Shown one piece after another: positions 25,769-49,703 of a DNA stretch of 59,610 bases. The translations under genes and the position numbers were made by a program. Within the stretch, counting starts at the first letter, position 1; the number at the start of each line of letters is the position of its first letter. The notes beneath the pieces were generated by a model, which was not told the DNA's origin, made no database searches, and worked only from the letters and a program-made list of their open reading frames with translations. Location: the NCBI RefSeq assembly GCF_001194135.2, contig NC_068986.1:72913859-72973468 (forward strand), written 5' to 3'. The stretch comes from Octopus bimaculoides (lineage: Eukaryota).

Positions 25769-27894
25769 AAGGTTATAAACCCCATTAAGGGTTAGTAAAA
25801 TCTCATGAAAATACTGGTTAGTTACCAATCCATAGAAAGTTCAACTATAAGGTAACCATATAAACCGTGGTTCACATATTTAAAGATTAAGGAGAAATGG
25901 AGAGGTAATTAATAAAATATTATTTATTCATTATAAAATACTGAATCAAAACAGCTGCCTCTCCATTTTCTCCTTATTCTTTACATATGTATGTGTGTGT
26001 GTGTGTGTGAGTGTATCCTATGTAGTTAAATGCACGCTACAATTCTTTATGTGTTAAACTGAAAATAATTCTTAATCAAATGAAATTATAACTGCAATGA
26101 TAAACGTCTAACGTTGGTGAAGATTAATTTCAAAAGAGTCAAGGGTGATAACTCTCAAACCGTCAAATTATCAGGAACTAAGTGGAGATAATATTCCGAA
26201 AGGAATTAAGTGGAAAATATATACTAGGTAGTGGTAACTATGGTCACAAAGCTCCAGATGTTTTGGTCTTATTAAACCTCCTTAACATAGTCATTGTTGC
26301 CAACTGATTCTATGGATAAAATAATTGCCAAGAGTGCCTTCAGTATGAAAGAGACATAGTTAAAAGCTGGTTATCGTACTTAATTTTGTGAAAAGAAAAT
26401 ATATTTTAATTTTTTTAATTGATTAAAAATGTGGTAAAATTTCTGATTAACACCCGCACGATTTTCACTAGGGTGTTAGGGTTAAGGTTAGGGTTTAGGG
26501 TTACGGTTAGGGAATTCCGTCACTAACCCTAACCCAACCCTGACCCTAACACCATAGTGAAAATCGTGCGGGTGTTAATCTGAAAATTTACCAAAAATGA
26601 AGTCAACCTTAAGTATATGACCTGCATTTAACTACAGCTCTTTCATACACACGCCAAAAATTTTTCCAATGTGTGTGTTCGCGCGCGCATGTTTATGTTT
26701 ACACAGTCTAAAACTCTGGGTTGTTTATGTTGTTCCCAGCCCAACTTAGAAACAGGCATCGATGAAATATGTTTGCAATGAATACTGAGATCGATATGGT
26801 GACTTAACACGAGCGTAGTTCAATGACACAGATCATTCAAAGGCATACTACATTTTTAAAATTATTACAAGGGAACTCCTACTTTTGTATTGCATGAAAT
26901 AAACGATAGTGTTAACTTTCTACAGTTAAGTAGGGTTCTATACTAAATTGGGGCGATCTTTATTTTTTATAAGTGAATGTAAAGCTCGAGAAGTTCACGT
27001 TCAAATAACAAAGAAATGTAATTTATGTAAGATAATAATTTAATTCTAAGATGCATTAATATTTTTTACAATTATAGAAAGCGTATTAGTGGTTGCTGTT
27101 GTTTAGCCCACGGTTCAGCTCTAGTTCTCCTTGTGACCTTCCTATCTTATCGTCAGACAAGGTTTGACACTATTTAATGCCTCCTTTTAATTAAACTGGG
27201 AGGATGTGATTTGAGGGAGATTTGACTGTTTCTCACAGGTTCAGCGAAACATAGAGGTTGTCCAGTAAAACAAGTGTAGATACAAAAACCTAGAACACAT
27301 GAAACAGGTAAATGACGAAGAACAAAGTGAGTTTGTGTCAACTGATTATTATGTAGATTTAAAACAAACGTTGAACGAAGAAATAACATTCTACAGTGTA
27401 TTATTATAAAATTTTATCTAAACTATTCTGTCTCTTAATAATATAATAAAGGTATTTAATACAGTATGCTATATCTAATTAAGAAATAATTTTCTTTTTT
27501 AATGACGTAGAACAATAACACTATTCTCTCTCCTCACATATGTAAGAAGCGAGAGAAAGTGTTATTATACATAAGCACTTCGACTTGAACAACTTCAACG
27601 AATTATATATACATATATATATATATATATATACACACACATCTGCAAACTCATGCATAACATGCGTTTACTAGATCGCCTGTAAGGTGTAGTCTTAAAA
27701 AAATTCAAGTGCGTTAAGATTAAACATTGAATTTCGTAGTGATTTAGAGACACAATATCAATAACTACATGGGTTCTATAGATGATTTTTAAAATATTCT
27801 ATTGACTGACAATTGTTTTAGTAAAACTAGTTCTTCAGTAGATTTAGTATGATACAAACAAACATGCCTGGTTATCGACATCCTCCTCAGCCAT
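4446..27894 (-). CDS. PEX14: Peroxisomal membrane protein PEX14, 5' part; complement(join of 27868..27894, 12173..12235, 10841..10888, 8770..8854, 5394..5516, 4446..4540); 147 codons, continues beyond the left edge
   Basis: Manual splice gives MAEEDVDNQ-TVGVTSDGQPQLAEEDSAEKL-VSGNLVNSSSVPRENL-IYTAVSFLNHNKVRNTSIAHKKSFLKRKG-LTDEEILEAFKRSG...-VPHVTAWNRIRETIVAGILLWGISKAAHRIYK. This matches the Pex14_N motif (human PREPLIATAVKFLQ...RRAFLKKKGLTDEEI) and the following hydrophobic segment. All intron phases are compatible. Confidence 0.93.
5394..5516 (-). CDS. PEX14: PEX14 coding exon 5 (G-LTDEEILEAFKRSGTPEDD...TIQ), 123 nt
   Basis: TTTTCACAG acceptor, AAG|GTAATA donor, GLTDEEI motif, phase 1/1. Confidence 0.96.
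5785..6023 (-). mobile_element. RTE-type LINE 3' end with C2H2-like tail (C..C.R.C.S.AGL.SH)
   Basis: Near-identical, inverted copy of 14464-14705. Confidence 0.8.
6177..6229 (+). ncRNA. Decayed type I hammerhead-ribozyme-like motif (Penelope-type)
   Basis: TCCCTA-CTGATGA-GGCTA/TAGTT-GAAA-G-TGAT/ATCA-GAA-TAGGGA; core positions 15.2 and 16.1 do not fit. Confidence 0.45.
6902..7126. mobile_element. MITE with 21-bp perfect TIRs and internal TTAGGG-like repeats
   Basis: CTACTTAAATACAGAGGTCCC (6906-6926) and its reverse complement (7099-7119); TTCAC direct repeats at 6897-6901 and 7127-7131. Confidence 0.75.
8082..8682. other. Assembly gap (other gaps: 14084-14463, 36135-36144, 42429-42519, 56349-~56796)
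   Basis: Runs of N. Confidence 1.
8770..8854 (-). CDS. PEX14: PEX14 coding exon 4, Pex14_N core (IYTAVSFLNHNKVRNTSIAHKKSFLKRK-G), 85 nt
   Basis: TTCCAG acceptor, AAG|GTAAAT donor, strong similarity to Pex14_N. Confidence 0.96.
8951..9177. mobile_element. piggyBac-like non-autonomous element (TTAA|CCCTTTAG...CTAAAGGG|TTAA)
   Basis: TIRs flanked by TTAA. Further copies at ~10050-10230, 13142-13369, 24940-25180, 35490-35716, 46370-46590 and 47848-48070. Confidence 0.75.
9495..9886 (-). mobile_element. tRNA/CORE-like SINE with a second SINE family nested inside it (9639-9860)
   Basis: Host sequence is interrupted; CAAGCTTCTTA is duplicated at 9628-9638 and 9861-9871. Confidence 0.8.
10841..10888 (-). 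CDS. PEX14: PEX14 coding exon 3 (VSGNLVNSSSVPRENL), 48 nt
   Basis: Polypyrimidine-TTTAAAG acceptor and TTA|GTAAGT donor; ends in PRENL, like human PREPL. Confidence 0.92.
12173..12235 (-). CDS. PEX14: PEX14 coding exon 2 (TVGVTSDGQPQLAEEDSAEKL), 63 nt
   Basis: TTTCTAG acceptor, CTG|GTAAAT donor, open frame, phase 0/0. Confidence 0.8.
13611..13698. repeat. 16-bp minisatellite (ATGTATGTACAAACAT), about 4 copies
   Basis: Direct reading. Confidence 0.9.
14464..14705 (+). mobile_element. RTE-type LINE 3' end (…LVCNVCSRVCLSRAGLISHQWSRKCKI*) with (CAT)n tail
   Basis: ORF 14059..14625 after the gap; zinc-finger-like C-terminus. Confidence 0.8.
16480..17598 (+). mobile_element. Degenerate RLE-type non-LTR retrotransposon 3' end (R4/Dong-like) with a tandemly repeated C-terminal segment
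   Basis: Frameshifted motifs EETINHVISDCKSL, ILWNIPIHTDTEIKVNQPDIAIKDK, TETIPIIIGALGMIKK; ends in (AAT)n. Confidence 0.8.
17599..18112 (-). mobile_element. Two tandem copies of a tRNA-derived SINE separated by a long (AAT)n tract (~17815-17922)
   Basis: Reverse complement of TAAGGCGGCGAGCTGGCAGAA…GAGTTCAAATTCC (A/B boxes). Other copies at ~4650-5100, 15940-16145, 19030-19170, 20050-20240, 22685-22900, 34910-35100 and 39005-39190. Confidence 0.85.
19170..19560 (-). mobile_element. Penelope-like terminal region with a 39-bp inverted repeat
   Basis: 19403-19441 is the near reverse complement of 19522-19560; minus strand carries CTGAGGATGAGTC…CCTGAAAT, a PLE-end-like motif. Confidence 0.5.
20290..20720 (-). 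mobile_element. Degenerate CR1/L2-like LINE 3' fragment, probably continuing at ~21250-21850
   Basis: Decayed C-terminal coding similarity (…TALPSPNKS…) with frameshifts. Confidence 0.5.
20854..21237 (-). mobile_element. tRNA-derived SINE with (CAA)n tail
   Basis: A box TGGCCCAGTGG; flanked by ATTCTTT(A/G)ATAT; same family as 34017-34405. Confidence 0.88.
22048..22500. repeat. ~450-bp foldback: ~190-bp inverted arms of Penelope-like terminal sequence around a tRNA-like head
   Basis: 22048-22231 is the reverse complement of ~22294-22500; the loop holds A-box TAGTGCAATGG and B-box-like AGTTCAATCCC. Confidence 0.8.
26433..26592. mobile_element. 160-bp palindromic MITE containing head-to-head (TTAGGG)-like repeats
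   Basis: ~50-bp arms starting GGTAAAATTTCTGATTAACACCCGCACGATTTTCACTA; flanks AAAAATGT and AAAAATGA look like an 8-bp TSD. Confidence 0.85.
27074..27228 (+). repeat. Left copy of a ~150-bp inverted repeat pair
   Basis: Reverse complement of 28943-29094 with scattered mismatches. Confidence 0.85.
27868..27894 (-). CDS. PEX14: PEX14 coding exon 1 (MAEEDVDNQ)
   Basis: ATG in a good context (ATAATGG) in a CpG-retaining region. It ends in phase 0 at CAG|GCATGT (GC donor), matching the phase-0 acceptor of the next exon. Confidence 0.65.
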
Positions 27895-28030
27895 TATCTT
27901 CCACCGGTTATTGTTTACATATCATGGCAGAAAGAATATAGATATATGAAATATATTAACGAACACGTGTTTCCACAGACAACTAATTACCTCCCTTGGT
28001 CTCATTTCGTGTTTTTATGTTTAAAAGACC
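27895..28030 (-). promoter_or_regulatory. Putative PEX14 5'UTR/core promoter; E-box CACGTG at 27964-27969
   Basis: Directly upstream of the ATG, CpGs retained, no acceptor site seen before the ATG. Confidence 0.4.
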
Positions 28031-28041
28031 AATATTTACCT

Positions 28042-28257
28042 AACATAAGGCGGCGCGCTGGCAGAAACGTTAGCACTCCGGACAAAATGTTAAGCGACCT
28101 TTCGTCCGTCTTATCGCTCTGAATTCAAATTCCGCCGTGGTCGACTTTGCCTTTCATCCCTTCAGGGTTGGTAAAATAGGTACCAGTTGAACATTGAAAT
28201 CAATGTAATTCACTTGTCCCTCCATCGAACTTGCTGGCTCTTTGCCAAAATTTGAAG
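28042..28257 (+). mobile_element. tRNA-derived SINE with a 13-bp TSD, just upstream of PEX14
   Basis: CCAATATTTACCT at 28029-28041 and 28258-28270. Confidence 0.9.
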
Positions 28258-28942
28258 CCAATATTTACCTTTTTGCTGAACTATATTTTGTCGATACCTA
28301 GACTTTTATTTGTATCAGTCGAACGACTGCGGCTAGGGTACCGCCTTGAAGGGTTTTAATCGAACGTATCGACCCCACTACTTCTTTTAAGAACGTAAAC
28401 AAACTAACAGCAGTTGTGAAGAGATAGTGAAGTTGAAGTACAAACGCAAAAGTGCGTGCACCCGACGGGCTTTTTTTAGTTTCCGTCTACCACATCCTTC
28501 ATTAACAAGTCTTTGGTCGGCCCAGGGCTAAAGTAGAAGTCATAAAGTGTCACAGTGGGACTGAACCCGGAACCATATGGCTGGGAAGCAAACTTCTAAT
28601 CAATAATTTCTTCGAATGTTGATGATTATGCATTTCTATAGATGTGAGGCAAAAGACTTTACATTTATGGAGTCAAATTATTGTCTGCTTAATTTACTTT
28701 AGTAAGCAATAGGTACAAAATGAAAAATTGATCCCAGCGATACAGAGAATAATATTAAAACGTCTTCACTTTTAAATATTAAATGTAAACCTGTACATCA
28801 GGAAATATGATATAGACAGATAGAAAGAAGGACGCTTCTGTGTTTCCAAGACCACTATGCAATGTAAGTATCTATGTTATCAAAAGAATTCGTTTTCCAC
28901 GTCAAGAATTAAAATGAGGAACTATTTTAACGTTCAGTATAT

Positions 28943-29094
28943 CAGTCAAATCTCCCTCAAATCAAATCCTACTAGTTTAAATAAAAGAAGACATTAAATA
29001 GTGTCAAACCTTGCCTGACGAAAAAATAGGAAAGTTACAAGAACTGGAGCTGAACTGTGGGCTAAACAACAGCAACCACTAATACGCATTTCTA
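28943..29094 (-). repeat. Right copy of the ~150-bp inverted repeat pair
   Basis: See 27074-27228. Confidence 0.85.
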
Positions 29095-31704
29095 TCAGGG
29101 CACACTGGGAAGTTGCCTAGGAACCTAATTCTGACCCATGTAGGACATGGTTTGCTGTCAATAAAAGTACTATAGGGCCCAGTGCATTGATTTGACCAGG
29201 GGCCTATAATAGTTTTAATGTAGCCCAATAAAAAGTCCCCAATAAAAGATGAGACTGGTGGCTTGCACAAAAGTAGTTTTCTTTGGGGAAACTGCATCTG
29301 TTTATAATGACAAATTCTTGCAACAAACCATAAGTAGCCATCTACAAGATATGGAATTTTGCTGAAAGTTATTTCCTTAGCAGGACCAATTCAAATAGAA
29401 TGAAGGCCATAATTTTGTATAAAAATAACTATGTCTAGTTTATTTGCTTTTGATCATTCTCACTTCTTTTAACATTTGATACACTCAAGAAGTTTATAGT
29501 AATACTTTGCTCAATTTAATTAGAATATTTGGTGAATCCAACTTCACTGTCCACTATTTCCCTTTCATTTGTTTTACTTACAGTTTGTTAGTTTCTGTGC
29601 AAGCCTGAAAACCAACTGATTTTGACAATATTAATACTTTCTCCAAGCTCTACAAAAAAAAATGTAGTTACCTTTGTAGCAGTGATTTGAAACCAAACCA
29701 CTAGGTAAGCAGTCAGACACCAAAAGTGAACTACAATAATGTCACATGACCAGTTTTGTAAGCAACCAATCACTGTCAAGCTGTCATATGATTTAATCCT
29801 CTAGAATCTTCTTGTACCTTATAAAACACTGCTTTTGACACCTACACTCCTTGCAGTGTTGAGAGCAGTTGACTCATTCACACATCTCACTTCTTGCCAG
29901 GTGGAATATTGAGGCAGCTGAGAGATATATGTCTCCATTTTTGCTACATCTGCCAACTCAAATAGATCACCAAGACAATGGCACAATTGTTTACATATAT
30001 GTCCGGAAAGCCACATGTTGCCATACCAATAGCATGCTGTAAATTCAGAGCAGTGTCTCTCTCTCTCCCAGTATGCAATTATTACTGTTGTTAACTGTTA
30101 AAGGTATCTTTATGTGCGATAAGAAATTCTGTTAAATGTTTGTGAGTGTTGTTCATTTACTTCTTCAGGTAGTCCAAGAAACCTTTTCATTCATTAACTC
30201 AACCACCTACCACAGCAGCATTAATGAACTGCTATAATATACTAGTGCCATCCAATGATACTGTCTGCAACAACCACAACACTGGGACTACAATAGCAAC
30301 AACTATGGTACAGCCAAACAGCATTCTGATCATTGGTGACAACTGACATTTTCTGTGCATGTTTTTGTTTACTTTTTAAAAACAGTAAATAAGATTGGCT
30401 TGTCCTGTAAACATCATTCATTCACAAACACATTTATATCCTTGCAGCAGACATGTCCAAAGTTAACAATTTTTTTTGCAGACTTCAATTGTAGTCAATT
30501 CCACACATGCCTGCATATTATATGGTATTCCATATTTCTGAGCAATAAAACATCATCTATGCATCTCTTTTATTCAGTGTTCTCATAACTTTCATTTCTA
30601 AGAAATGTTTTCTCTATTTGCATGTGTTTTGCATCTCAACACAATTTTGCATATACGAACTATGAGCATGGACATTTTATTTGCTTTCACCTTATTACAT
30701 GCCTTTTTGCTTTTGTATTTCAATATTTGACTTATTTACTGTATTGATAGTTCATCCTCCTCCTCCTCATCATCATCATCATTTAATGTCTGCTTTCCAT
30801 GCTGGTATGGGTTGGATAGTTTGACATGGAACTGGCCAGACTCCAATTGTCTGTTGTAGCATGGTTTATATGGCTGGATGCCCTTCCAAATGCCAACCAC
30901 TTAGCAGAGTGTACTGGGTGCTTTTTACATGCCACTGGTATGGGTGTGTTTACACAGCACCAGCATGGGTGCATTAATGCAGCACCAGCATGAATAGTTT
31001 TCATGTGGCACCAGCACCTGAAAGGACAAGCCTGTACATGTGGAAGACAGTGATTTTACAGCAAATCACCACATCTCCCAGTCCCTTGTCATTTCTTCAG
31101 CGAGGCCAACCATCCAAAGATCCTTTCTCATCACTTTGTCCCATGTCTTCCTGGGTCTACCCCTTCCACAGCTACCAAAAAATTTGGACTTTACTCAAGT
31201 CTACATGCACTATTCTCTTTTTAAGTAAATCCTCTTTTTATTGTTTCATTCTCTTACATTTCATGTAAAGAACGGGGAGGAGAATAATTTTAGCAGTTAT
31301 TTGAAACCAAACCATTACGACTGAACCACATGATCAGCATAGTAAGCAACCAATTAGTGTCAAGCTGTTGCATGATCTAATCTTCTAGAATCTTCTTTTT
31401 GTACACTATAAAATGCTGCTTTTGGCACCTTTTTGCAGAGTGTTGAAAGCAGCCAGCTCATTCACACATCTCACCTCTTGCCAGGCAGAATGTTGAGGCT
31501 GCTGGGCAATATTTCTCCATTCTTGTTACATCAGAGAGCTCAGATAGGTGACCAAGTATACTTGTTTTCAAATATGCTGGGAAAGCCACATTTTGCCATA
31601 CCAATAGCTTGTGGTAAAATCAGAGCAGTAATCCTCTCCCAGTGTGTAATAATTATAAACTCACAGAAGCCATGTTTGTCCAGTATAGCAGCAACTTTTC
31701 TGCT

Positions 31705-34405: not shown

Positions 34406-37043
34406 ATTACATATACTACATATGCGATACTCTACTGCATGTAAAAAAAAGCACTTTCATGCAGAAGTAACAATATTGGCAATATTGAAGTGCACACCAC
34501 AAGACATAAATGCAATGGAGCAGCAAGAATCTGTTTGAGTCTGCCTTACTGACTCCATTGCAGTTATCAGAACATATAAAGGAATTGTTCAACTTACAAT
34601 TAGCAGCCAAATTCTTTATATCATACTCTACTATTGTATGAAAGGAAGGACACATCAGATAATGTGAGCTTTATACAGTGCTTGAAAAAAAAATGAAGTG
34701 GCTATGTGTGGAATGTCTTTGATCACAGGACAGCTCTGTGGACATTAAATGATGATGATGATGATAGTTGTGACCTACATGAGGAATATTCAGGTACATC
34801 TCATTTCATTGTTTCATTATAAACTGTACTTTAGACTTCAGTGGTGGAAGAAATATTTTTCTTGAAGCTTGTATTTTAAAGTTGTATACATGTACCTCTT
34901 CTTAATATTAGTTTCAAATTCTGGCACAAAGCCAGGAATTTTGTGGGAGGGGATAAGTTGTGACACTTATTTTATTGACCCCCAAAAGGACAAAAAGCAA
35001 AGTTGACTCTGGCAGAATTTGAACTCAGAACCTAAAAGACAGACAAAATGCTGCTAAGCATTTTGCCTGACATGCTAATGATTTACCAGTTTGACACCTT
35101 ACCTCTTCTCAATATAGTTGGAATGGGTTGAATTGACTGCTATGTTTGTTTTGTTTCTATCAGATATAATTCTCTCCATTATATTTATTACAAACCAATG
35201 AAAGAGTTTCTAGATGGTCACTCAGTTTGTTGTAAATTGTAACTAATTCTCTTCAACCACCCAGCCATCTTAAAAAGAGGATAATGAAATCTTGTATATA
35301 CAAAACAATGAGATGCCCACAGTAAAATACCTTTACTCACACCTCTGCTAGATCAGGGCTGACTTGGGATCAAATGACATCTTAAGAATTATATTGTGGT
35401 GGTAATGTTTCTACAGAAACAATCAACCAGGTTACAGTAGCAACCAAGTTTTTATTTTAAAAAGACTCAGTAAGCTCACAAACCACTTTGACCTTTTAGC
35501 ATTCAGATCATTCTGTCAAATGTAATGTTTATTTATTCACATTGTTTTGAATTAATCTGGCATTACCTTGTAGCTTTAAGATTTCAATGATATGATTGAT
35601 TCTTTTTAGGATAACACTGTTCGGTATGTGTGAGGAGCCAAATGTAGCTGGTTTGAACATTTTTATATTAGAATATTTAAGCCAGATATGGCCTCTTTAA
35701 ATTCCAAAGGGTTAAAATAATTACAATGTGTTTTATATTCTAAATATTGGAACAAGATGCTCCTCAATAAAGATAGGAAACTATCGAATGGATATTCTGT
35801 TTAAATTCTAATCTTTTATCACTTATATGTGTCAAGAAGTCAGCTCAAGTAAAAACAACTGTTCCTATCCCCAAGCAATGGTATCTGTGGCTTTTATCAG
35901 TAAGTGCCCTTTCTAGAATATTAAGTCTTGCACTGCATCTTAGATTGAAAAGAGGAAAAATCTTTTATTCTGTTTACTTTTTTTTTATCTCACTGCAAAG
36001 CAAATACCAACTCTGATAAACAATTAAAATGTAACAGTCCTGACGAAATGAAATTAGTTATTTATAATAAATGTTAAAGATAATTTTTGCATTTCATGGT
36101 TCTTATGTTCAAAGATATTCCGTTTCGTTAATCANNNNNNNNNNATATATAAACTTCCAATTGCCTAAAAAAATAAAATTTAAAAAAAAACCATTAATCT
36201 GGCAATTAATGTAGTTTTTATGTCTACAAAAAATTGGCAATCTGGTGCATCTGAAATTAAAGTTACAAGATGCAAAAACTAACACAATATTCTGCAGGAA
36301 AATCAAGAATTTAGGATTAAATATTCCTTGTGTTGCTTATTCTCTTATTCTGATATATTATTACAAAGCTTCCATCGATACGCAACGTTCGTATATTCAA
36401 ACATGTCATCAGATGGGAAATTAACACGACCGAATTATATTAAAAATTACTTATTATTTCATCAGGATTTGATTTTTTTGCATTTTCTAAGCATATTTTG
36501 TAATTTCAATCAAATGTCCCAATTTCTTATTTTAAAAAGTCAGAAAAATGTTAGAAAACGACAGCGACATCCATTCAAAATATTGTTATTCATACTGATA
36601 CTACTGCCGCCTGTTAGTGCAACCACCTCTATGAGACATACTTCTACCACTACCACTCCTTACTGCCGATTGTGAATTTCAAGTAGAAGCGATTCGTTCA
36701 TGCTATCCTAGTCTTCTTACAACGGAATAACTGTTTTTCCCTGCCAGTGTAACAAAAGTAACTGAATAGAAGAATAAAGGAGTTATAACCAAAGCTGTAT
36801 ATTCCTGTCGACCTGATTCCACGGTTCTGGAATTTTGGATTCCACCAAACCGAGATATCTTTTACTTCATTCTGATTATAAAGGTTGGAGCTTCATTCTC
36901 CTCGACTAGTTCGTTTAACTTAATTTTTATCGTAGAAATCTGGCCATTTTTTTGTATCATTTTTTTAAATATCATTTTTTGTATCATTTTTAAAAATCGT
37001 TTTAGTGTTATATATAAAGATATACATACATATATTTACCATA

Positions 37044-37093
<50 letters not shown>

Positions 37094-38069
37094 TACTAGA
37101 ATTATACTTAATATATAGTTATTAATATAAAAGAACGTGTTTTATAGTAATTTTTCTGTGTATTTTTTGTTTTCATGAAAATCTCAATGACAAAAGGCAA
37201 ATAAGATTAATGTTTATTTATTTAAAAAAAATTTTTAGTGTATTTCTTTATGATCATTTCTGTTGCTCTCTTAGCAACTTTTTGCAGTGCAAACTTTTAA
37301 CAAGCTATTGAAAAATGTTCTTTGAACATTTTCAGCAAAATAAACTAAACTCCATAATCCCAAATTTCAAGCCAGTTCGAGAGATAACATTTTACAAAGT
37401 TATGTTCAATTTGTTTTTCGAAGTCAGAGTAAAAAAATCTTTTTTTTAAATAAAACATATGAAGGTCGAATGTAAGTGTGTGTGTGTCTTTCCATTTATA
37501 TGTGTGATTATGTATGTTGCTTTGAGATTTTTTTTTTTTTGACTTACATTACAGAATTCGAGCCGGTCACTAGCAAAGTGGCTCTTTTGTTCAAATCAAG
37601 ACAGCTCTTGGGATTTGTAGTTTATCTGAATTCGTTGGTGTGTACATATATGCGTGTGATTGTCCACGTGTGTGTGTAGAGCATGCAGATAAGCTTACAC
37701 TCATGTTGTGAATGTGCGTGTCATGTACGTACGCAAGTTTGTGAGTGCATGTATATTCCATATGTATATGTGATTAAGGGTATGTATTTAACTAGGAACC
37801 TCAAATGGAAAATCCCTGAAATGTTTTACAAATTTTTGCTGTCTCTCTAATCGATTGTATGTAGAGAATGTAAATCAGTCTGCTTTGTTCTTTTTGGAGA
37901 ACCCATCATTTCCAGGTTTTATGCAGATCTCTTGTTACATAACTCAATGTACTTATGATAATAGTAACAAATGAAAATTTATAGCCTGGATATAAAAGCT
38001 GTAGGTTTCTTATGATTTATTCATAGATGTTCTTTTCTCTAATTTTTAGTGAGAGATTTGCATCTATTG

Positions 38070-39830
38070 GGCAACTGAACTTTACAATGGTGCATGACAG
38101 TTCCTTTTCAACAATATCTGGCCTGTTGAGCTTACACCAAGTTGTTGTTTTAATTGGAATGTTCTATCAGTATTCTTTATTTTTAAAGTTGTGAATACTT
38201 TCTGGTTCTTGTGTGCTTTATAACAGTTGTCAGGACTATCCTTCCTGTGTATAGCATTACAGATGGTCTTAACGACAATCTGACGTCTCATGTGAAGGTA
38301 GTACTTTGCAGACATTTTTGGACAACTGCTGTTGATGTAGGTGATATTCTCCACACTAGTAAGGCATGACCCTTACTATCTCAGTGTGGTGGTGGAGTCT
38401 AGAGGAACATGCTTATCTCTCTTGTTGATCAATTATTTATCTCCTGGTCTTGTATAGGAAAAGCATAGCTTTCTAGGTGAGATGTGATGTACTTGTCACA
38501 GGTCCAGGAGAGGCTACTATTCCTGGTAATCTTGTTGGCATTCTCTAACTTGAATGATATATACCCTCACATAACTTATTGTTGGCATGGTGAGTATTTC
38601 TCCTCCAAGCCTCTGTTTAAGTAGGTCAGCTCAGCCAGCCTTAGTTCATATGGAACAGAGTACCTATTCAAGAGTTTTTCATTTAGAGTGAGGATCGTGG
38701 AGTCTCAAAGCGTGCAGCATTATTGGCCAAGTGCTCTGGTTGTCTCCTTTCTTTACTGCTCAATAATGTTGCCTAAGTGATATGATGCAGCATTCAAAGG
38801 CCTGATCTTATTATGCATCTTCCTCCACCTCCATCCATTTTATATAGATCCTGTCATGGGAGTTTAAGGACTTTTCTGTCCTGTTTATTCATGAGATATT
38901 TTGTAGCTATCTCCTGCTTTTGGCTTGCAAAACCATAGCTTTCAAGATGTAACATGATGTAACAGTCACAACTCCATGAGAGGCTATACTCCACATCAAT
39001 ATTGATTTCAAATTTTGGCACAAGGCCAGCAATTTGCTGGTAGGGGTAAGTCAATTACATCAACCTCTGTACTCAACTGGTTCTTATTTTATCAACCCTG
39101 AAAGGAAGAATGGTAAAGTCAATCTTGGCAGAATTTGAACTCAGCATTTCACCTGGTGTATTAACAATTCTGCCAGCTTGTTGCCTTACTCCATATTAAT
39201 ATTATCGTCCTCTTCTAGGTTACAGGAAACATGTATGTGCATAACCTTTTATGTTGAGTGATTCCCTTCCAGGTCTTCTCTGAGACATGATAGCCTTGCA
39301 CTTTTGGATTTCAATGAGAAGTTATCAGGAAGTATTTCCTGAGGAATTCACTACCACAGGATGTTATTCATTTCATTTTCAAACGCTTGGCTGGTGTATT
39401 TGTTTTTGCTGCTATTGTTTAGCAGATACTGTCTGAGTTATTTCATACAGCACTTGGAGGCAGTCTGTACACTTAAGTTTCTTCTTCCCTCTTTTCTTCT
39501 GTGATAGAATCTGTCCATATCACTGTTTCTATGGAAATTTGCAGTTTATGTCAAGATTTGCATATTTTAATGTCTGTGGGTTAGATTTTCTGTATAGGTC
39601 AATTGCATATTCAAAAGTTGGTATCAGTACAGGCGGAAAGCGACTGCCATATCTTTAGTCTAGTTTATCATTCTTTGGTTACTCTGTCCTTGTTCATAAT
39701 ACTTTTGAATGATATATTGTCATCAATATCTGGGTATCGATTGCACCATTCATGCAAAGATTTTGGTTTAAGGAAATAGTCTTTCCACATTCACTTTTTA
39801 AATTTGAACATTTCTTTTGTTCAAACTACA
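38070..39830 (-). mobile_element. Degenerate RLE-type non-LTR retrotransposon (RT thumb plus zinc knuckle), interrupted by a SINE at ~39005-39190
   Basis: ENITYINSSCPKMSAKYYLHMRRQIVVKTICNAI and DLYKMDGGGR-like motif. Confidence 0.65.
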
Positions 39831-40329
39831 TCTTTGTATCAGTGGAAAGTATTATGAAAGTGTTAAATCTAGCTATGTTTCAGTTTTGTAAATATTTCAA
39901 ATAAAGATCTTTAGATTGTCAACAAACTATTTATGAGTGATACAAGTGTTTTTTTACAGTTATGCAACCTAAGACATAACTATCTTTCATGAAAGAAATA
40001 ACAGTGTGATAGGGACAAAATAAACAGAAGCACTATGAGATTGTCATCTTGTGTATATGTAGATATGCATGCATGCATGGATATGTATGTATATATATAT
40101 ATATATATATATGTACAAGCAGAGATGCCTGGCATCACTTGGGATTAGAAACAGGTGATACAGGAAAGTACAGCATTGATGACAAAACATTTGTGGAGTA
40201 AATGATGGGCTAATTCAACTAAGTGATTTGTCATTCGTCTGTTTGGAGTATTCCAGGCTTTAACCAGTCACGGAAAATTGGTGTGTGTGTGGTGGGGGTA
40301 TGTGATTTTTGAATGCACTGAAAAGCTGT

Positions 40330-41340
40330 CAGTGGATATATTCTCCATTGCAGCAGTTGGCGCTGCGTTTAACATGACCCATCATCTGAAGTTTTGACAC
40401 CTCCTTCGGGTTTGTTGTCCTACATCACTCATAAAGAAAATTTGGAGCAACTGTGGTTGTTCATTTGTGGGTAACAGGGAACCAATGAGGTGATAGACTT
40501 CCCCTAGAACTTTCAATGTTGGCATAAATCCATGCACCAAACGATGTCATTTGAAATGTAGAGTTGTATTGTCTGATATTGTTTACAAAATCCTTTAAGA
40601 CTGGATGGAAGTGCCTTCCAGAAGATCTATAAGAGGTTGAGGAGGAACTGGTAGTGCTGATAATCTTACCTTACTGCCTGAGCAGCGCATGCCATTAGTT
40701 TCATTTGGAAATTTTAAAGCTTTGCACAAATGACAATTTTAGTTTAGCACACCAATTTGGACAAAATTATCATTTTTATAAGAATGGGATGGATCATATC
40801 TGAAAGCAGCTCCAGGAGTTGTGAAGAACAAATTTGTACTTCACAACTGTTTCTGAGAGCTTTTCTATTGGACTGCTCTCTAATCATTAAAACGTCACAT
40901 TAAAACATTGTTTTAATGATTCATCATTAAGTGCTGCAGCATGCGTTTGCTGATCTTGAGAAAGTCTCATCTCCCTTCTGTATTGAGAGTCTATCTGACA
41001 TGCTGCAGCATTCCTTTGCTGATCTTGGTAAAATTTCATCTCCCTTCTCTCTTGAGACTCCAGTTGATGTGCTGCAGCAAGTATTTGCTGATCTTGAGAA
41101 AGTCTCATCTTTCTGTATTGAGACTCTTGCCTTCAGTTTTCTACAGTCCTCCTTGCCTTATTCTTGTTTCCAGAGTGATTACATCTTTTCTTTGGTGGCA
41201 TATTTTTTTCAATATTGTAAACCAAAAATTATGAACATTTTAACAAATGCCTTAAACTAGTCCTGAGTGCACATGTAGAGATAAATCTGTGTCCCCTAGG
41301 ATAGGTAGTTGATATATCCTCCATTCTTTACAAGGCAGTA
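40330..41340 (-). mobile_element. Helitron Rep/helicase N-terminal remnant with 69-bp (23-aa) repeats
   Basis: CHLCKALKFPNETNGMRCSGSKVRLSALPVPPQPLIDLL…NNIRQYNSTFQMTSFGA, preceded by repeats REMRLSQDQQ..AAA. Confidence 0.88.
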
Positions 41341-41650
41341 ATCTCTATTATTGTAAGCAGTTGTATGTATGTAGTATGTCCTTATTTTTGTTTGCAGTAT
41401 AAATTAACCAAATAGAAGCACATATATGAACTGATAATTTGACAGTGAATTTGCAACTGCTGTGATAATTATTAACTGGTAATTGAATGGTAAATGTGTA
41501 TTTCTATATACCTTGGACCTTCCACTTCATTGTTTTTTGTCCAGCTGTTCGTTATGTCAGTCAACACACATACACTGACACATCATTTTGCTGTTGTGGC
41601 TGTAAAGACAGAAAGTTGCTGATGTGTAATGTTGTTCACATTAAGATATA

Positions 41651-41760
41651 ATTAGAATTAAAAGTGAAACAATATTATAGTCTTATCACATTAGAATTAA
41701 AAGTGAAACAATATTATAGTCTTATCACATTAGAATTAAAAGTGAAACAATATTATATCA
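41651..41760. repeat. 39-bp tandem repeat, about 2.8 copies
   Basis: ATTAGAATTAAAAGTGAAACAATATTATAGTCTTATCAC. Confidence 0.95.
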
Positions 41761-42396
41761 TATTACAATACAGATGTTATTCTTTCAGTTTTGACATGTA
41801 ATACTGAACCAGTGCCAATGTTGTATTGTTTTAATCCCAATGAAAAAAAATTACATGTTGACACTTACGGGGTCTGATACTATTACTATGTAAAATTTGA
41901 TTTGATTTGGTTTAGCCATTTGAGAATGCATTGGGAACAGACAGACAGACAAAGAATTTTATCTATATATATTAAATATTTTTTAAAGTCCAAGCTATAC
42001 GAGTTAAAAGAAAATAATTACAGGTCAATGACTGACCTGTACTCTCAGAGAATTCAGCTATAAACAATTTTTCTCTGTAAATTTCCTGAAGAAGGAATCC
42101 GAACCCTGAAATATTGAAATATCAGGTTAGTACTAACCATCAAACTGTAATTTTAACATTTTTGAACTTACATTCATTTGGTTTTAAGAAAAAATTATTT
42201 GAAACCTTTATATGTATATATAAAGATTATAATTATTACAAATAAAAGGGTAAAGGATTATCAATTTGTTAATAAATTAATAATTAATAATTTTTACCAA
42301 GCCCTTCAGTATGTAAACACCATTATCGGTGAAGAACTTATTTAAAAGTTCTTATACATTTATAAACATAATTAAGGGATCAGCAACAAGATTATG

Positions 42397-42428
<32 letters not shown>

Positions 42429-42594
42429 NNNNNNNNNNNNNNNNNNNNNNNNNNNNNNNNNNNNNNNNNNNNNNNNNNNNNNNNNNNNNNNNNNNNNNNN
42501 NNNNNNNNNNNNNNNNNNNATATATATCAGATATTGCTTCATGAAAACTATATCACTCTAACACACACACGTGTGTGTGTGTGTGTGTGTATAC

Positions 42595-43255
42595 ATGGGC
42601 CCTGAATGCAGAGGACGTGCGAAGACTAGAGAGGAATAAAATTGGTGTGCTTTGTTGGATGTGCAATATCAGTGTACACGTGACGGAGCACTAGTGTTTT
42701 GAGAGAAAAGATAGGCATAAGAAGATTATATGCAGTGTGGAAGAGACGAGACTGCACAGGTTTGGTTATGTGATGTGGATGGATGAGGACATTTGCATAA
42801 ACAAGTGCTGATCACTTAAAGTGGAGAGAAGTTGTGAAAGAGGGAGACCCCAGGAGACATGAGATGAAATATTGAAGGCTGATCTCAAAATGCTCACCTT
42901 TATGAAGATGACAGAAGACTGAGATATGTGATGCATTGCTGTACTCAACAAGACCTGCCCTCCACAACAGAATTGATATCCTGAGACCAAGGTGCCCTGT
43001 AAAAAGCATTGGTGTCATAAAATTCACTGGTGCTGGTGCCATGTAAAAAGCATTGGTCATGGTGCCACATAAAAAGCACTGGTGATAGTGCTACATGAAA
43101 AGTACCCAGTACACTCTGAAAAGCAGTTGGTATTAGGAAGAGCATCCAGCTGTAGAAACCAAACCAAAATAGACTCTGGAACCTTATGTAACCCCTATCA
43201 GGCTGCCCAACCCATGCCAGCATGGAAAACGGACATCAAATGATGGTGGTAGTGA
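42595..43255 (+). mobile_element. RTE LINE 3' end running directly into the (GAT)n-tail retroposon sequence
   Basis: RRLERN…LCWMCNISV…RLHRFGYVMWMDED…RGRP…DLK; similar fragment at ~48340-48780. Confidence 0.75.
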
Positions 43256-43954
43256 TGGGCTCTCCTGTCATAATGACAGATGAGGGTTTCGTTCTGCAAC
43301 CAAGAACTCAAGATCATAGTGAGCCACCAGTTTGCTGAACAACCCATACAGATGATTTGTTTATAATGATCAAATATTCGTGCTCACTTCCTCTATCAAA
43401 TCAACATTCTCTGTACAGGTGTACAGTGTTCCACATATCAGATGTCAAAGTTATTGCAAACCAAATTGAGAATATTAGGTTTGTCTACCTTACTGGTCCA
43501 TAGCCAGAATAATATGACATCATTTATGACAGACCAGTCTATGGCTAATTTTTAAATTTAGCTATAGAATCATATGTAAATTAATTATTTGTAAAGGCAG
43601 CCCATGTCTTAAAGCTTTACAGGATAGTGGTTTTGTTGATAAATTCTTTTATAGCCCTCCTCCTTCTCAACCATGTAGATGTAGGAGTAGGTCCTGCAAC
43701 CTTTTTATGGTTCACTCTGCTTTTCTCTCTAAATGTTATGTCAAATATAGGTAGAAAATTCTTACTTTTATTAAAGAAACACTTTCCCCACAACCATAGT
43801 TATAACAAAATATTTAACAGATTCAGTTAACATTACTTATTTCTGTTTCCCTAATGTAAAAGCCTATATCAACATTTTAACAAATGCTTTAAACTAGTCC
43901 TGGGTGCACATGCAGAGATAAATCTATGTGTCCTCTCGGATAGGTAGTTGATAT

Positions 43955-44200
43955 GTCCTCCATTCTTCACAAGGCACAAGTAACAGCAAACAACAACACC
44001 AGCTGGACAGAAACCAAGCACTACAAAGGATCTGTGGAAGGAAAATTTAAATTCAGATACAACCATCTTCCTTTAGGTACTTCAAAAAGAGACATACCAC
44101 AACCATCTCAGCATTTATCTGGAAGATTAAGGACACGGGCATCCTATAGCGTCAACTGGGAGATTCTAGGACCAGATCATGTATTAATGAATCAGAAAGT
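43955..44200 (+). mobile_element. Penelope-like element, GIY-YIG-region fragment
   Basis: KHYKGSVEGKFKFRYNH…SAFIWKIKD…SYSVNWEILG (frameshifted). Confidence 0.7.
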
Positions 44201-45396
44201 TGTTCTGTTGGCTCGCTTATTATACTTTATCATTTGATGAATTTATAAACCTCCTGGGACTGTATAAATACCAGGAATGAAATTTTCTCATCATATCACA
44301 CTTTCCATTGTATATTTTAGTAGGAATTAAATATAAACTAGCAGACAGACCACAACCCATTAATTTGGTTGCAATTCTATGGAGCTCCAATCAGTGAATA
44401 TATTCCACCTGTACCATCATGTTTGCAGTGAGATATCCTGTTTATACACCACAAATGCCTGATAACTCTTGTAACTTCTATCATTCCAACAACCTTTCCA
44501 CTTTTTGTTTTCCTTTCTGCTTGGTTTATGAAATTTTCACCCCATCTAAGAACCTATCTTTATTAAATGTTCATTGAATTATCTACCTTTCATCACTTTC
44601 TGTCTTTTTCAAACTACATGTTCTTATTTAAAGTTCTCTTAAATCATACAGAGTTACTAACCCACCATATTGACATTACTAACATGAAAAATAGTGAAAT
44701 AAATTTCATATTCCTACCAGGAAACTCTGGGTAGCTGAATTTCTGTTTTTGTAATGGATATCCATATAGCAAATTCATATATAAACATCAAAAAATAAAT
44801 CCATGGCAATTTAGAACTCAATTAATAATAGGTTGTTAAACTCAAACCTTATTTCATTGTAGTAAATTATTTCAATTTAAATTAATTATGTATCACAATT
44901 ATATAATTATGCGTTTGTTTGGTGTTTATCTTAATGAAACTAAAGCTGAGCACAATTAATGTATGAATTATATGTGAAATTTATGCTTTTCTGATATGTA
45001 TATATTCATACACACATATGCACACACACACACACACACGTTTGTGTGTGTATGTGTGTCTATTGAATTGCACGTAAGTACTAAATAATAATGTCTGTGT
45101 ATGCATTATAATATTATGAATTCATTATAATCATATAATTATTAATATTAACATTTATGTCCATAAAATGTATTTCTCATGTTGTAATGAAACAATTGTA
45201 ACTACAGAATTAAAAATAATACCATAAATTCCTGTCTTTGTTTCAATATATACATACACTGTGGCTCATATACTGGACAAGGAATTTCAACTTGTATGAA
45301 TAGTTTTCTTCATAAACATAAAATATCTACATATTGTTGACAGCTGAGATTTGCAGACATGCTTCATGATAACAGCTCAGATTGTAATCCCTTTTA

Positions 45397-45441
<45 letters not shown>

Positions 45442-45454
45442 ATGTGTGTGTGTG

Positions 45455-45720
45455 TAGGCATGTTCGTGTGGTTAAGATGCTTACTTTGCAAATGTGGATT
45501 TAAGTTCAATGTTGCTGTTTGGCACCTTGCACTAGTGTCTTTTACTATAGCTTCAGGCTGACCAATGCCTTGTGAAACAATTTGGTAGACAGAAACTGTG
45601 TGGAAGCCTGTCATGTGTGTGTGTGCGTATGCTTGCCTCCCACCGCTACCACAACCTGACAACCAATGTTGCTTTGTAACTTCGCAGTTTAGCAAAAGAG
45701 ATCAATAGAATAGGTACCAA
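45455..45720 (+). mobile_element. tRNA/CORE-like SINE
   Basis: GTGGTTAAGATGCTT…GGCACCTTG…GTGTCTTTTACTATAGC; other copies at ~5130-5280, 14770-14900, 24010-24160, 28460-28597 and 52440-52580. Confidence 0.75.
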
Positions 45721-48700
45721 ACTTAAAATATAAGTATTGATTGTCAGAAGGTATTAGTGGAATAAAATTTCCCATGGAAGCCTGCTGCAAGACAATATGG
45801 TATGGGAGCTTCTCTCTCCACAACAGTGTTACTACTCGTCCCACATTTATTTTACTGAAATCAGTTTGCAACTATCAAAACTAAACCTCAATTATCTTAA
45901 CCCTTTAGTATCTTATAATAATTCTGTTTGTTCCACTGTTACTTAACCCATCCGTAATGCTTCCACATGATTAGTTAAAGGGGGAAGGAGGAAGGGGAGA
46001 GATGGTGGTGCGTGAAATGTGTAATTTCTTTTAACTAAGTTTTTTTTTCTGTTACTTAGCCCATCTTTAATGCTTTCATGTGATTAATTGAAGGGAAAGG
46101 CAAAGAGTGAAAGAAAAAGGGGGTAAGGTGAAGAGAGAGAGAGAAAGGAGAGTGATGTGTATTAAGTCTATAAAATTGTGTATAAAATATATAAAGTGCA
46201 TTAAGTAATCATTGTATTTCAATTTCTTTCACTTTTCAATGATTAGCAGACAAGTGACTATCTTTTGATACAGACACAACACAGGCTACACTTTCAGGTT
46301 TTTTGGATAAATTTTTCAGAAATACCTCAATAAGTTTACTATTAATTCTATGAAATATTCACTGGTCCTGCTAGTTCAGATTATTCTGTCAAATGTAATA
46401 CTTATTAATACACATTGTTTTGAATTAATCAAGCATTATCTTATCACTTCAAGATTTCGATGTTGTGATTGTTTATTTTTAGAATGGCATTATGGGATAG
46501 ATGGGTGTGGCCAGATCTGGCCACTTTGAGCATAAAGCATGTGGAATAATTTGGCCAGATATGGCCAGTTTAAATGATAAAGGGTTAATGTCACATGCCT
46601 TCAGTGTCCTATATAGATCATGGTTGTCGGCCCTCCTCCTCTCACTAATTAGTAACAATGAAGCTACATGGTCATCTGCTAAAAATATTGTGAATTAGGT
46701 AGTTGTCATCTTAGTTTATACAATGCACATCAAATTCAACTCTTTTTATGCTGATTTCCATTGGAAATGGAATATGGTCTAATTGTTATGGTAAACTATA
46801 TTTAAGATTTGTTTGATAACAAAGAAAATATTACCTCAGAAAAGACGTTATAAAACATGTTAACTTAAAGACAATCAACAATTCCCCAAATGAAAGTCTT
46901 CCTAATCAGCTTAAAGCTAACTTACTCTCTGTTCTACCAACTGTAAAAATACTACTCTTTAAAAAGATAGTATTCATAACTTTTTTGTTTTGATTACAAT
47001 GAGAAGAAACTGTGTTTGTTTCTGGTTACTCATTAATAGTGGAGTAACAGAAGGAATAAAGTACCAAGCTAAATACTTTCTTCTGAGATAATCTAGGGGC
47101 CGAACTTAACTTTTATTTAGCTTAAAATAATAACAGTTTTATTCCTCAAAACAAGATTATCATTAGCATTTATATGCATATTTTTAGCGATTAATAATTG
47201 CCTGCATTTTTGTTTTTACCGTTGTTTTTTTAAAATGAAACAAATACTGATTTTACAAATTAGTATTTGAACAAATATTATGACAAATGCCAAAATACTG
47301 TATATACCCAAATAAAAGTTGAGTTTTTCAGACCATTTTTTAAGGCTGAATTTAAAGGGTTGACTATTATGTAGATGTTTCTTTTCCTAGGATTGAATTT
47401 CATGTTAAATTTGCATTGTAATTTTTGTTGGCAAAGGCTTAGTTTGTGTAAATCATTACAAAACAAAAGTATGAAGATTTATGGAAATTCATTTATGGTA
47501 ATACACATCAGCACACATTTTGTGCTATAAAACCCACATTAATAAATCATTACCATGGCCAATATCTTTAAGTAATAACATATGGTGATACATTCCAGAA
47601 GGCTGGTATAACTAAAATTTTCTTTAGTTTTTCCCTCTGTCTCTGGATTTGTTAGACTGACAAATTGTATATGTAATGATACACTGCACCCAGTTGTATA
47701 TTTACTGAGATAGACCTAAAATATTAGGTTGACTTTTTGGCAAGATCAAATATTACTTGAGTATATATTGTACATCAAAATGACAACACTGTTTCTGACA
47801 ATGATCGGCTGTTTGATTGGTTAGAATAAAAGATCTAGTATTTAACCCATTAACATTTAAAGTGGCCATATCCAGCCAAAATATTCTACCTGTTTTATGC
47901 TCAAACTGGCCAGACCTGGCCTGTCTGACCTTACTCTACAATGTCATACTAGAACTAAACAATCATATCATTGAAATCTTGAAGGTATGAAATATTGTAT
48001 GAATAATTCAAAACAACATGAATAAATAAGCATTGCATTTGACAGACTAACCTGAATGCTAAAGGATTAAATAAAGGTTCTAGGGTAGGTCTCTAGCTTA
48101 GCTCAGGAGTGTCACTTAAAGATGACCAAAGAGAATACTGATTGAAATGTGTCAGCATCTCTGATGATGAACATCCAAGATTCCAAAAACAAACACCAGT
48201 AACAACCATCATCATTTATTGATATTCTTTTGTGATTTAAGTAAGAAAAAACTAGTTGTAAACTATAAATTTGGGGTGGAGGACAAAAAATGATAATGTT
48301 TTAACTCTTTTACTTTAAAAATTAAATTTCATAGTTATTCAGATGTTATGTGCAAAAGAGAAGACTGCACTGGTTTGATCATGTGATGCGTTTGGATGAG
48401 GATAGCTGCATAAAGAAGTGCAAGCTCTAATTGTGGAGAGTACCTTTAGAAGGGGTAGATCCAGGAAGATGTGGGATAAAGTGGTGAGAAATGATCTTCA
48501 GACACTGGGCCTCATTGAAGAAATGACAAGAGACTGGGAGATGTGGTGATTTGCTGTCCTTGATAAGATACATCAAGCTAAGTAACATCACTGTCTTCTA
48601 CACATACAGGATTGTCCTTTCAGGTACTGGTGCTGGATGCACACACCCAGCACACTCTGTTAAGTGTTAGGAAGGGCATCCAGTCATAGAAACCATACCA

Positions 48701-49594
48701 GCTGGAGTCTGGATAGCTCCATGTCAAACCGTCCAACCCATGGAAAGCGGATGTTAAATGATGATGATGATGATGATGACTCCAATAATGATGTTAAATA
48801 TCTACCAAAAAATAGAATCAGTATTTTCTGCAAGTTATGTTGCCTCAATAAACTTGACATATTGTCAACAGAAAATAGTTTCAAACATGATATTCCTCAA
48901 CAAAAATAGAGTGGTATATAAAACTGCTTTCTGCAGTTAAGGACAATAAAAGTCCTAATGAATATATGTTTTCCATTGGTGTAGCTAATAAAAGAGCACA
49001 TTTTTTCAAAATTGGTAACTTTTCAACAATTATTTTTACCTCTTCAATTTGCTTGTGTGATAAAAATTGAACCTCTTTTTTTTTTTTTTTTTTTTTTTTT
49101 TGTTAATTTCATGGCCTTCAAAGCACTTTCTAGAGTCATTACTTTATTTGACTGACCTCCTGTGTTTTTGAACTATCTACTCAATATCCTGTGATGTGTT
49201 GGTGGCTACTGACATCTGAAGAACCAAAACAAACCCTGTTGTCATAACTGCTCAACACTGGATAATTCTCTGGAGTTACATCTTTTTCATGTCACACCTA
49301 TATTAGTAGTTGTAAGTTTCATATATAATGCCATTGTTACTGAATCATAAAATTAATGAATGTAGAATACAATTATGTATATTATAACTAATAAAAGATT
49401 TCACATAATATAAGGGAAATGGGTAAAAAAACTATTTGGTATGTTTCTTGACACCTTTTATGTGTTCACTCCACTTAACTTTAGAACTTGGCTTTGAGCG
49501 CCTCTACTAGAAATGTCAATAAAAGGGTTAAATATTAAATTTTTGTTTCCTTTATCTTTCAGAGGTTGCTTGATGTAGGTGTTTTTCTTCAAAC

Positions 49595-49703
49595 ATGAGC
49601 CAAACTCCTAACCAAAATGCCAAGGCCTTTAAAATCTGGAACAGCGAAAGAACTACGAAAAAACCTGTTGTAGCAAGTAATCTGCAAGATTTAGTTTTAA
49701 AGG
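49595..49703 (+). CDS. DFFA: CIDE-N domain, first coding exon (MSQTPNQNAKAFKIWNSERTTKKPVVASNLQDLVLK-G); symbol tentative, from domain plus synteny
   Basis: Matches the CIDE-N start pattern (FKIW..ER..KK.VVAS.L.DL). The acceptor TTTCAG at 49561-49562 implies an upstream non-coding exon. Confidence 0.85.

Follow-up and report, generated by a model that had tools for sequence, protein, structure and literature searches.

The 59,610-nucleotide stretch of Octopus bimaculoides DNA analyzed here (contig NC_068986.1, positions 72,913,859 to 72,973,468; hereafter the window) carries the peroxisome-import gene PEX14 on its minus strand and, transcribed divergently from the plus strand, a gene encoding a CIDE-N domain, with the two start codons 21,700 bp apart. 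A first-pass annotation had read the latter as the octopus orthologue of DFFA (ICAD, DFF45), the inhibitor and chaperone of the caspase-activated DNase (CAD), kept beside PEX14 since before the protostome-deuterostome split. The divergent, head-to-head arrangement was confirmed in the window and recurs in the octopod Argonauta hians, but the gene is not an ICAD orthologue: its product has no DFF-C domain (PF09033), carries a Myb/SANT-like trihelix domain (Myb_DNA-bind_4) instead, and a separate canonical gene with both CIDE-N and DFF-C is also present in cephalopods. This makes the window gene a co-orthologue (paralogue) of DFFA whose architecture, the combination of CIDE-N and trihelix domains in an ancient syntenic slot, is new.

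The gene, referred to below as CIDE-N/Myb or chimeric, has three coding exons. The start-codon exon (49563-49703, plus strand) holds the ATG at 49595, and contributes 109 nt of coding sequence (49595-49703) with the N-terminal half of CIDE-N; its phase-1 end splits the Gly codon of ...LVLKG. The second (51317-51478, plus strand; 162 nt, phase 1/1) encodes the C-terminal half of the domain (EADGTDVDDEDYF...), while the terminal exon (53135-53976, plus strand; 842 nt including the stop codon at 53974-53976) opens with D-G-G and encodes a variable linker, the Myb_DNA-bind_4 domain, a basic stretch and a long C-terminal helix. The exact spliced model reproduced the coordinates, strands, 162-nt exon size, phases and D-G-G opening of the first-pass annotation without correction. 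The 370-amino acid product shares 99% identity with an Octopus vulgaris protein of the same length. Pfam assigned CIDE-N (PF02017) to residues 10-85 (E = 4.6e-25, 87.9 bits against a gathering cut-off of 23.5) and Myb_DNA-bind_4 (PF13837, trihelix) to residues 191-277 (E = 2e-19, 70.2 bits against a cut-off of 27). Among solved structures the N-terminus matched Drep2 (8e-17), CIDE-A, CIDE-B, ICAD/DFF45 (1.7e-8) and CAD, and the C-terminal domain matched the plant trihelix factor GT-1 (E = 4e-11). An AlphaFold model was built from a shallow alignment of five sequences and used for its secondary structure alone, which is compatible with a beta-grasp fold for CIDE-N, disorder in the linker, three to four trihelix helices (predicted at 194-211, 218-231 and 238-261) and a long terminal helix (322-369) of coiled-coil-like character.

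The partner domains of DFFA, DFFB, CIDE-A/B/C and Drep2 were not detected. The 370-residue product gave no Pfam match to DFF-C at E ≤ 0.1, nor was it matched by a local DFF-C profile that recognized 86 other CIDE-N proteins (cluster representatives and members). A DFF40 nuclease domain was found neither with Pfam nor with phmmer against the C-terminal part of human DFFB, the CIDE-C domain of CIDE-A/B/C had no match in the product, and a local profile detected no similarity to the Drep2-type C-terminal region. CIDE-C is reported from vertebrates only (PMC2426694).

The same architecture, 350 to 370 residues long, occurs in O. vulgaris, in Argonauta hians (87% identity) and in two decapodiform transcript contigs of 1.3-1.5 kb, and its three-exon layout of 109/162/842 nt is identical in Octopus and Argonauta. 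Outside cephalopods it was not encountered: the CIDE-N region was used for an exhaustive HMMER search of 1.84 billion cluster representatives, which returned 582 proteins, and among the best 150 of these none of the 148 others, outside cephalopods, had the Myb part. Many of the closest representatives were CIDE-N+DFF-C proteins of about 200 residues, and the closest proteins of this kind, from chiton, Biomphalaria, Physella, Lingula, Glandiceps, Limulus, amphioxus, corals and others, were labeled DFFA at source. Between octopods and decapodiforms, approximately the whole coleoid span, hardly any change is seen in the CIDE-N domain, the Myb domain or the C-terminal helix, in contrast to a variable linker. 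The gene is under purifying selection.

The Myb part is encoded by one large intron-free exon, as is frequent in captured or retroposed sequence, and the deposited cuttlefish model P0005 misses it, so that the fusion could be an artifact of gene modeling, with the Myb exon a separate, possibly transposon-derived gene and the CIDE-N exons a truncated DFFA remnant. Transcripts make this explanation hardly credible. P0004 joins exon 2 (cuttlefish locus L004, 26760-26873) directly to the Myb exon (30621-31436), the two being separated in the genome by an intron of 3.7 kb, and matches the Acanthosepion genome at 100% identity; P0003 holds the full 350-residue open reading frame (ORF) on a 1343-nt contig; the splice phases are moreover compatible, the exon layout is identical in the two octopods and both domains are strongly conserved. 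Since a transcript joins the two exons at full genome identity, the fusion is a spliced mRNA and not a product of prediction.

A canonical DFFA exists alongside the chimeric gene. In cuttlefish, P0017/P0155 combines CIDE-N with DFF-C in a four-exon structure typical of lophotrochozoans. It shares a 3.54-Mb contig with the chimeric gene, from which it is separated by 216 kb and differs in strand. In Argonauta, the 202-residue P0084 can be aligned end to end with cuttlefish DFFA and is matched by the local DFF-C profile at 1e-16; its contig has the length of the one that carries the chimeric gene (48,430,988 bp) and is presumably identical with it. These genes bear directly on the first-pass proposal that the window gene is simply the single, plain octopus DFFA kept beside PEX14. 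Much about the locus agrees with that proposal, as the position and orientation relative to PEX14 are those of DFFA in shark, amphioxus, Glandiceps and Lingula, the intron positions and phases are those of DFFA, the O. vulgaris protein is named 'DFFA-like' by NCBI, and the VDDxxYF motif, a signature of Dffa (PMC2426694), is present. Against the replacement of DFF-C by Myb_DNA-bind_4 and the canonical CIDE-N+DFF-C proteins of cuttlefish and Argonauta, nonetheless, a plain orthologue is very improbable. Two of the features first taken as marks of DFFA also lost their value. The D-G-G that follows exon 2 is not conserved even among octopods, O. vulgaris having YGG at this place and Argonauta EAA, and is absent from decapodiforms and from the DFFA of chiton, Lingula and shark, so that its agreement with the human gene is a coincidence; the length of 162 nt is not diagnostic either, exon 2 ranging from 156 to 168 nt across species with only its boundaries and phases conserved.

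These boundaries and phases are what ties the chimeric gene to DFFA. Its coding exons (109/162/842 nt in Octopus and Argonauta) are separated by introns of phases 1 and 1, while DFFA has exons of 100/159/131/222 nt in chiton, 100/156/158/231 nt in Lingula and 94/156/140/216 nt in Biomphalaria, all with phases 1, 1, 0, and of 124/168/146/166/143/168 nt in shark, with phases 1, 1, 0, 1, 0, as reported for vertebrate Dffa (PMC2426694). The expectation that an exon bounded by two phase-1 introns fits the DFFA gene structure was thus borne out in all four species. Intron 1 falls in the Gly codon of '...KG/' in the octopus gene and in the DFFA of chiton, Lingula, Biomphalaria, shark and amphioxus; the amphioxus locus contains runs of N, and there exon 1 beside PEX14 and the position of intron 1 were read by tblastn. 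Because intron positions and phases are shared, the octopus gene is best described as DFFA exons 1 and 2 followed by a new terminal exon, entered in the same phase, in place of the DFF-C exons. The domain sequence by itself speaks less clearly: in neighbor-joining rooted on DFFB, the sister of the chimeric clade was purely of the DFF-C class in 246 of 300 bootstraps, purely CIDE in three and purely Drep2 in one.

The slot occupied by the chimeric gene is old. Canonical DFFA stands head-to-head with a Pex14_N gene in the amphioxus Branchiostoma floridae (226 bp from ATG to ATG), in the brachiopod Lingula anatina (226 bp, in two tandem copies), in the hemichordate Glandiceps talaboti (1149 bp) and in the shark Scyliorhinus canicula (1006 bp), whereas the distance between the start codons is 9756 bp in Argonauta, where as in the window the partner is the chimeric gene. 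PEX14 exons were confirmed by tblastn in amphioxus, Lingula and Glandiceps; the shark Pex14_N was taken from precomputed Pfam annotation and the shark DFFA locus from isoform X1. The first-pass annotation has human DFFA and PEX14 as divergent neighbors at 1p36.22. The published human gene order is CORT-DFFA-PEX14 (PMC554762). With the head-to-head arrangement in shark, amphioxus, hemichordate and brachiopod, the pair is older than the split between protostomes and deuterostomes, as had been proposed. It has been lost repeatedly since: chiton DFFA has a Kelch/BTB gene as neighbor, nothing was called within 10 kb upstream of Biomphalaria DFFA, and other genes lie upstream of Nematostella DFFA, none of the three having PEX14 within 10 kb. 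Of the animals named or implied in the suggested survey of PEX14 neighbors, amphioxus has the adjacency, and two molluscs, chiton and Biomphalaria, lack it within 10 kb. No paper naming PEX14-DFFA as an ancient microsynteny was found in a literature search that did not extend to supplementary tables.

The amphioxus (L005 9775-10000) and Lingula (L006 9775-10000) spacers are both exactly 226 bp long and unrelated in sequence; both hold CCAAT/ATTGG boxes, two of them inverted in amphioxus, as expected of bidirectional promoters. Lingula has two tandem copies of the entire PEX14(-)/DFFA(+) pair (L006 4749-16976) with almost identical spacers, and an extra copy of DFFA exon 2 was detected (tblastn, 15085-15255 and 15700-15870); either a recent tandem duplication or a duplication in the assembly could have produced this.

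On the PEX14 side, four coding exons lie on the minus strand and the remaining gene extends beyond the edge of the window. Exon 1 (27868-27894, ATG at 27894) is only 27 nt long, encodes MAEEDVDNQ and ends at a GC-type donor, CAG/GCATGT; exon 2 (8770-8854), with the first half of Pex14_N, and exon 3 (5394-5516; GLTDEEILEAFKRSG...) were identified by tblastn, Pfam and splice sites, and exon 4 (4446-4540), encoding a hydrophobic segment, by tblastn and splicing. The four exons splice in frame to MAEEDVDNQ/IYTAVSFLNHNKVRNTSIAHKKSFLKRK/GLTDEE..., the product of exons 2 and 3 matching Pex14_N with E = 1e-12 and a score of 47.9 bits (cut-off 23.2), and the boundary KG/LTDEE is common to amphioxus, Lingula and Glandiceps. 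A word-indexed homologue search with exons 2-4 gave no match, and exon 1 was fixed via the Argonauta locus instead. There the Pex14_N gene call begins at the homologous ATG, and the ATG, the short acidic peptide and the GCATGTTTGTTTGT donor are all kept; PEX14 of Lingula, amphioxus and Glandiceps likewise has a tiny first coding exon. On these grounds the 27-nt exon was accepted. Intron 1 (donor at 27866-27867, minus strand) appears to be spliced as GC-AG in both Octopus and Argonauta (L001, near 213), the equivalent donor being GT in Lingula, amphioxus and Glandiceps. In the window this intron is 19 kb long and holds a gap of 380 N (14084-14463). A PEX14 intron also contains an ORF (2148-2771, minus strand) that looks pogo/DDE-like by eye and matches Pfam DDE_1 below threshold (E = 8e-4).

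According to the first-pass annotation, only repeats are recognizable between the two genes, and this was true in part. No ORF of at least 50 residues in the interval matches Pfam at E ≤ 0.01, scans for Rfam families and tRNAs gave no hit, at least 23% of the interval has further copies within the window, and no gene was called between the pair in Argonauta or within 10 kb upstream in O. vulgaris. Spacer ORFs judged by eye to be Tc1/mariner-like or Helitron-like had no Pfam match. What had been overlooked is a single-copy non-coding block (36254-36985, plus strand), conserved with Argonauta (L001 3712-4407; 70% identity over 750 aligned columns, collinear), the core of which aligns to cuttlefish (L004 10253-10373), 7 kb upstream of coding exon 1. 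Apart from this block, collinear conservation of the spacer with Argonauta is limited to PEX14 exon 1 with about 70 bp upstream of it and a possible weak block at 46640-46859. That the block might be coding sequence of a gene between the two was considered and dismissed, since it differs from Argonauta by indels of 20, 18 and other non-triplet lengths and has no Pfam match.

The aligned cuttlefish segment coincides with exon 1 of the gene model deposited for that species and stops at an AAAG/GTT donor, homologous to the donor that follows position 36883 in the window (TTATAAAG/GTTGGA), and a polypyrimidine tract with an AG acceptor lies about 32 nt upstream of the ATG in the window, O. vulgaris and Argonauta. 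From the homologous donor and this acceptor we infer that the block probably contains the promoter and a non-coding first exon of the CIDE-N/Myb gene, ending at 36883 and followed by a repeat-rich intron of 12,679 bp (36884-49562, plus strand) in the 5' untranslated region (UTR). If so, the promoters would lie about 8-9 kb or less apart in the window and about 3.5-4 kb apart in Argonauta, and the transposon inflation would be divided between spacer and 5'UTR intron. The ~20 kb of transposon inflation previously assigned to the spacer would then need amending: the spacer is indeed repeat-rich, but some 12.7 kb of the distance is probably the gene's own intron. Just upstream of the proposed first-exon donor, a near-palindromic TTCTGGAATTTTGGATTCC (36825-36843) is kept in Octopus, Argonauta and cuttlefish; by eye it resembles a heat-shock element or a STAT site.

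Two of the five runs of N in the window fall between the genes. That of 91 N (42429-42519) lies within the proposed 5'UTR intron, and the sequence to either side of it is collinear with the O. vulgaris locus, which is free of gaps (L009 2923-3374 corresponding to 41729-42180, and L009 3423-3772 to 42572-42919). That of 10 N (36135-36144) lies about 110 bp to the left of the conserved block; it is not itself bridged, and the order of PEX14 exon 1, block and CIDE-N gene is the same in the N-free Argonauta locus. As both fall in non-coding DNA, no reading frame depends on either. Non-coding DNA of the window is 85-94% identical to the O. vulgaris locus, and kilobase-scale indels between the two inside the proposed intron (46109-47259 in the window; L009 764-1537 and 3773-4328) show recent turnover of repeats at the locus.

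Taken together, we consider it probable that an ancestral PEX14/DFFA pair was followed by a duplication of DFFA in cephalopods and by the remodeling of one copy, with a Myb exon, in the old slot. The bilaterian ancestor would have had PEX14 and DFFA as a close divergent pair, probably with a shared promoter. A local duplication in the cephalopod stem lineage would then have produced one copy that kept CIDE-N and DFF-C, likely the ICAD acting as chaperone and inhibitor of the CAD nuclease, and another that kept the place beside PEX14 and DFFA coding exons 1 and 2 with both phase-1 introns, lost the DFF-C exons and came to splice, with the phase unchanged, to one large exon encoding the Myb/SANT-like trihelix domain and the C-terminal helix. 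In the window, the 21.7 kb now separating the coding start from that of PEX14 would comprise about 12.7 kb of the gene's own 5'UTR intron, the rest being repeat-rich spacer.

Several observations weigh against this account. The pair is not universally retained, as the chiton, Biomphalaria and Nematostella loci demonstrate, and tblastn of the cuttlefish loci did not locate PEX14. The canonical DFFA was placed relative to the chimeric gene in cuttlefish only, and with the DFF-C model from Pfam Argonauta P0084 falls short of E = 0.001. The chimeric CIDE-N is about 51% identical to cephalopod canonical DFFA and no closer to it than to other invertebrate DFFAs. The 5' exon is proposed from sequence comparison, and the function is wholly inferred, for a protein whose AlphaFold model is of low confidence (pLDDT, the predicted local distance difference test, of 43). 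The CIDE-N sequence alone, finally, cannot separate the DFFA type from the Drep2 type: class profiles of equal size gave a near-tie (DFFA 105, Drep2 103 and CIDE 75 bits), and the best solved-structure match is Drosophila Drep2, ahead of ICAD.

The last two results would suit descent from a Drep2/Drep3-like lineage, with the place beside PEX14 a secondary coincidence or replacement. Such a descent is nevertheless very improbable, for the gene sits in the exact DFFA slot head-to-head with PEX14, an adjacency in the right orientation that, with few CIDE-N genes per genome, we estimate would arise by chance at about 1e-4; both intron positions are common to mollusc and brachiopod DFFA, the Drep2-type C-terminal region is absent by the local profile, and a purely Drep2-class sister is the rare bootstrap outcome given above. 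The phylogeny proposed as a check on the first-pass annotation consequently settled one half of its question: affiliation with CIDE and with DFFB is excluded, while the case against Drep2, which the profiles do not set apart, comes only from intron positions, synteny and the missing Drep2-type C-terminus.

Turning to what a DFFA-derived protein of this kind may do, CIDE-N domains pair head-to-tail through basic and acidic faces, as in DFF40/DFF45 and the Drep proteins. The octopus domain retains both a basic N-terminal patch (KAFKIWNSERTTKK) and the acidic patch EADGTDVDDEDYF, and could thus make head-to-tail contacts with itself, DFFA or CAD, while the trihelix domain would bind DNA. A role as CAD chaperone is unlikely, since DFF-C is missing; judging from the domain content, the most likely role would be a nuclear one, in which the protein, bound to DNA, teams up with CIDE-N proteins such as CAD, DFFA or itself. 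A more specific version can be offered as a tentative suggestion, which we do not favor over others: a cephalopod DNA-binding member of the DFF family, expressed from an ancient PEX14-linked promoter region, might join CAD/DFFA assemblies through CIDE-N while its trihelix domain binds specific DNA, and so tether or gate the apoptotic nuclease, or it might have repurposed CIDE-N oligomerization for transcriptional control.

Compared with known systems, the gene shares with DFFA/ICAD/DFF45 (Drosophila Drep-1) the N-terminal CIDE-N, two phase-1 introns and the head-to-head position with PEX14, but has a Myb/SANT-like trihelix domain and C-terminal helix where DFFA has DFF-C, its chaperone and inhibitor part, and coexists in cephalopods with a separate canonical DFFA. 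Drosophila Drep2 and Drep3, which have no nuclease or DFF-C, similarly join CIDE-N to an unrelated C-terminal part; the octopus gene differs from them in lacking the Drep2-type C-terminus, in its DFFA-type introns and PEX14 synteny, and in an architecture found only in cephalopods. With trihelix/Myb_DNA-bind_4 proteins (plant GT-1, animal MSANTD/MADF-like) it has in common the PF13837 match, the match to GT-1 solution structures and three predicted helices, whereas no described member with CIDE-N was found and DNA binding by the octopus product is predicted. As for conserved divergent gene pairs with bidirectional promoters and metazoan microsynteny, the head-to-head arrangement from vertebrates to brachiopod and the CCAAT boxes of the 226-bp spacers are what such pairs show; cephalopods differ in the 9.8-21.7 kb between the start codons and in the remodeling of one partner.

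Vertebrates, a brachiopod and animals between them have thus kept the PEX14-DFFA divergent pair, as have cephalopods, with their heavily rearranged genomes, in a modified version. Its retention, together with the CCAAT-bearing 226-bp spacers, suggests that a gene for peroxisome import and one for apoptosis are regulated jointly. The cephalopod partner illustrates exon shuffling at a conserved phase-1 intron, by which the inhibitor half of DFFA was apparently swapped for a DNA-binding domain, the outcome being a strongly conserved, cephalopod-specific CIDE-N protein that databases label 'DFFA-like'. Any inference of the cephalopod apoptotic DNA-fragmentation machinery based on annotation would choose the wrong gene as ICAD.

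Other unusual CIDE-N architectures were met in molluscs, where the domain seems prone to shuffling: P0009 of Plakobranchus ocellatus joins a zf-CW chromatin-reader domain to CIDE-N, P0065 of Argopecten irradians and P0012 have three tandem CIDE-N domains (with a weak Sushi match on P0065), and in P0022 of Bradybaena similaris DFFA is extended to 492 residues. Downstream of the CIDE-N/Myb gene, the Argonauta locus has a called gene of 104 residues without Pfam match (L001 12678-12992, minus strand), followed by a phosphatidylinositol-transfer-protein gene (IP_trans; L001 17952-22493, plus strand). In the window, the corresponding side holds, by eye, mariner-like and reverse-transcriptase/endonuclease-like remnants (54849-55073, minus strand, and 58207-59609, plus strand) that have no Pfam match.

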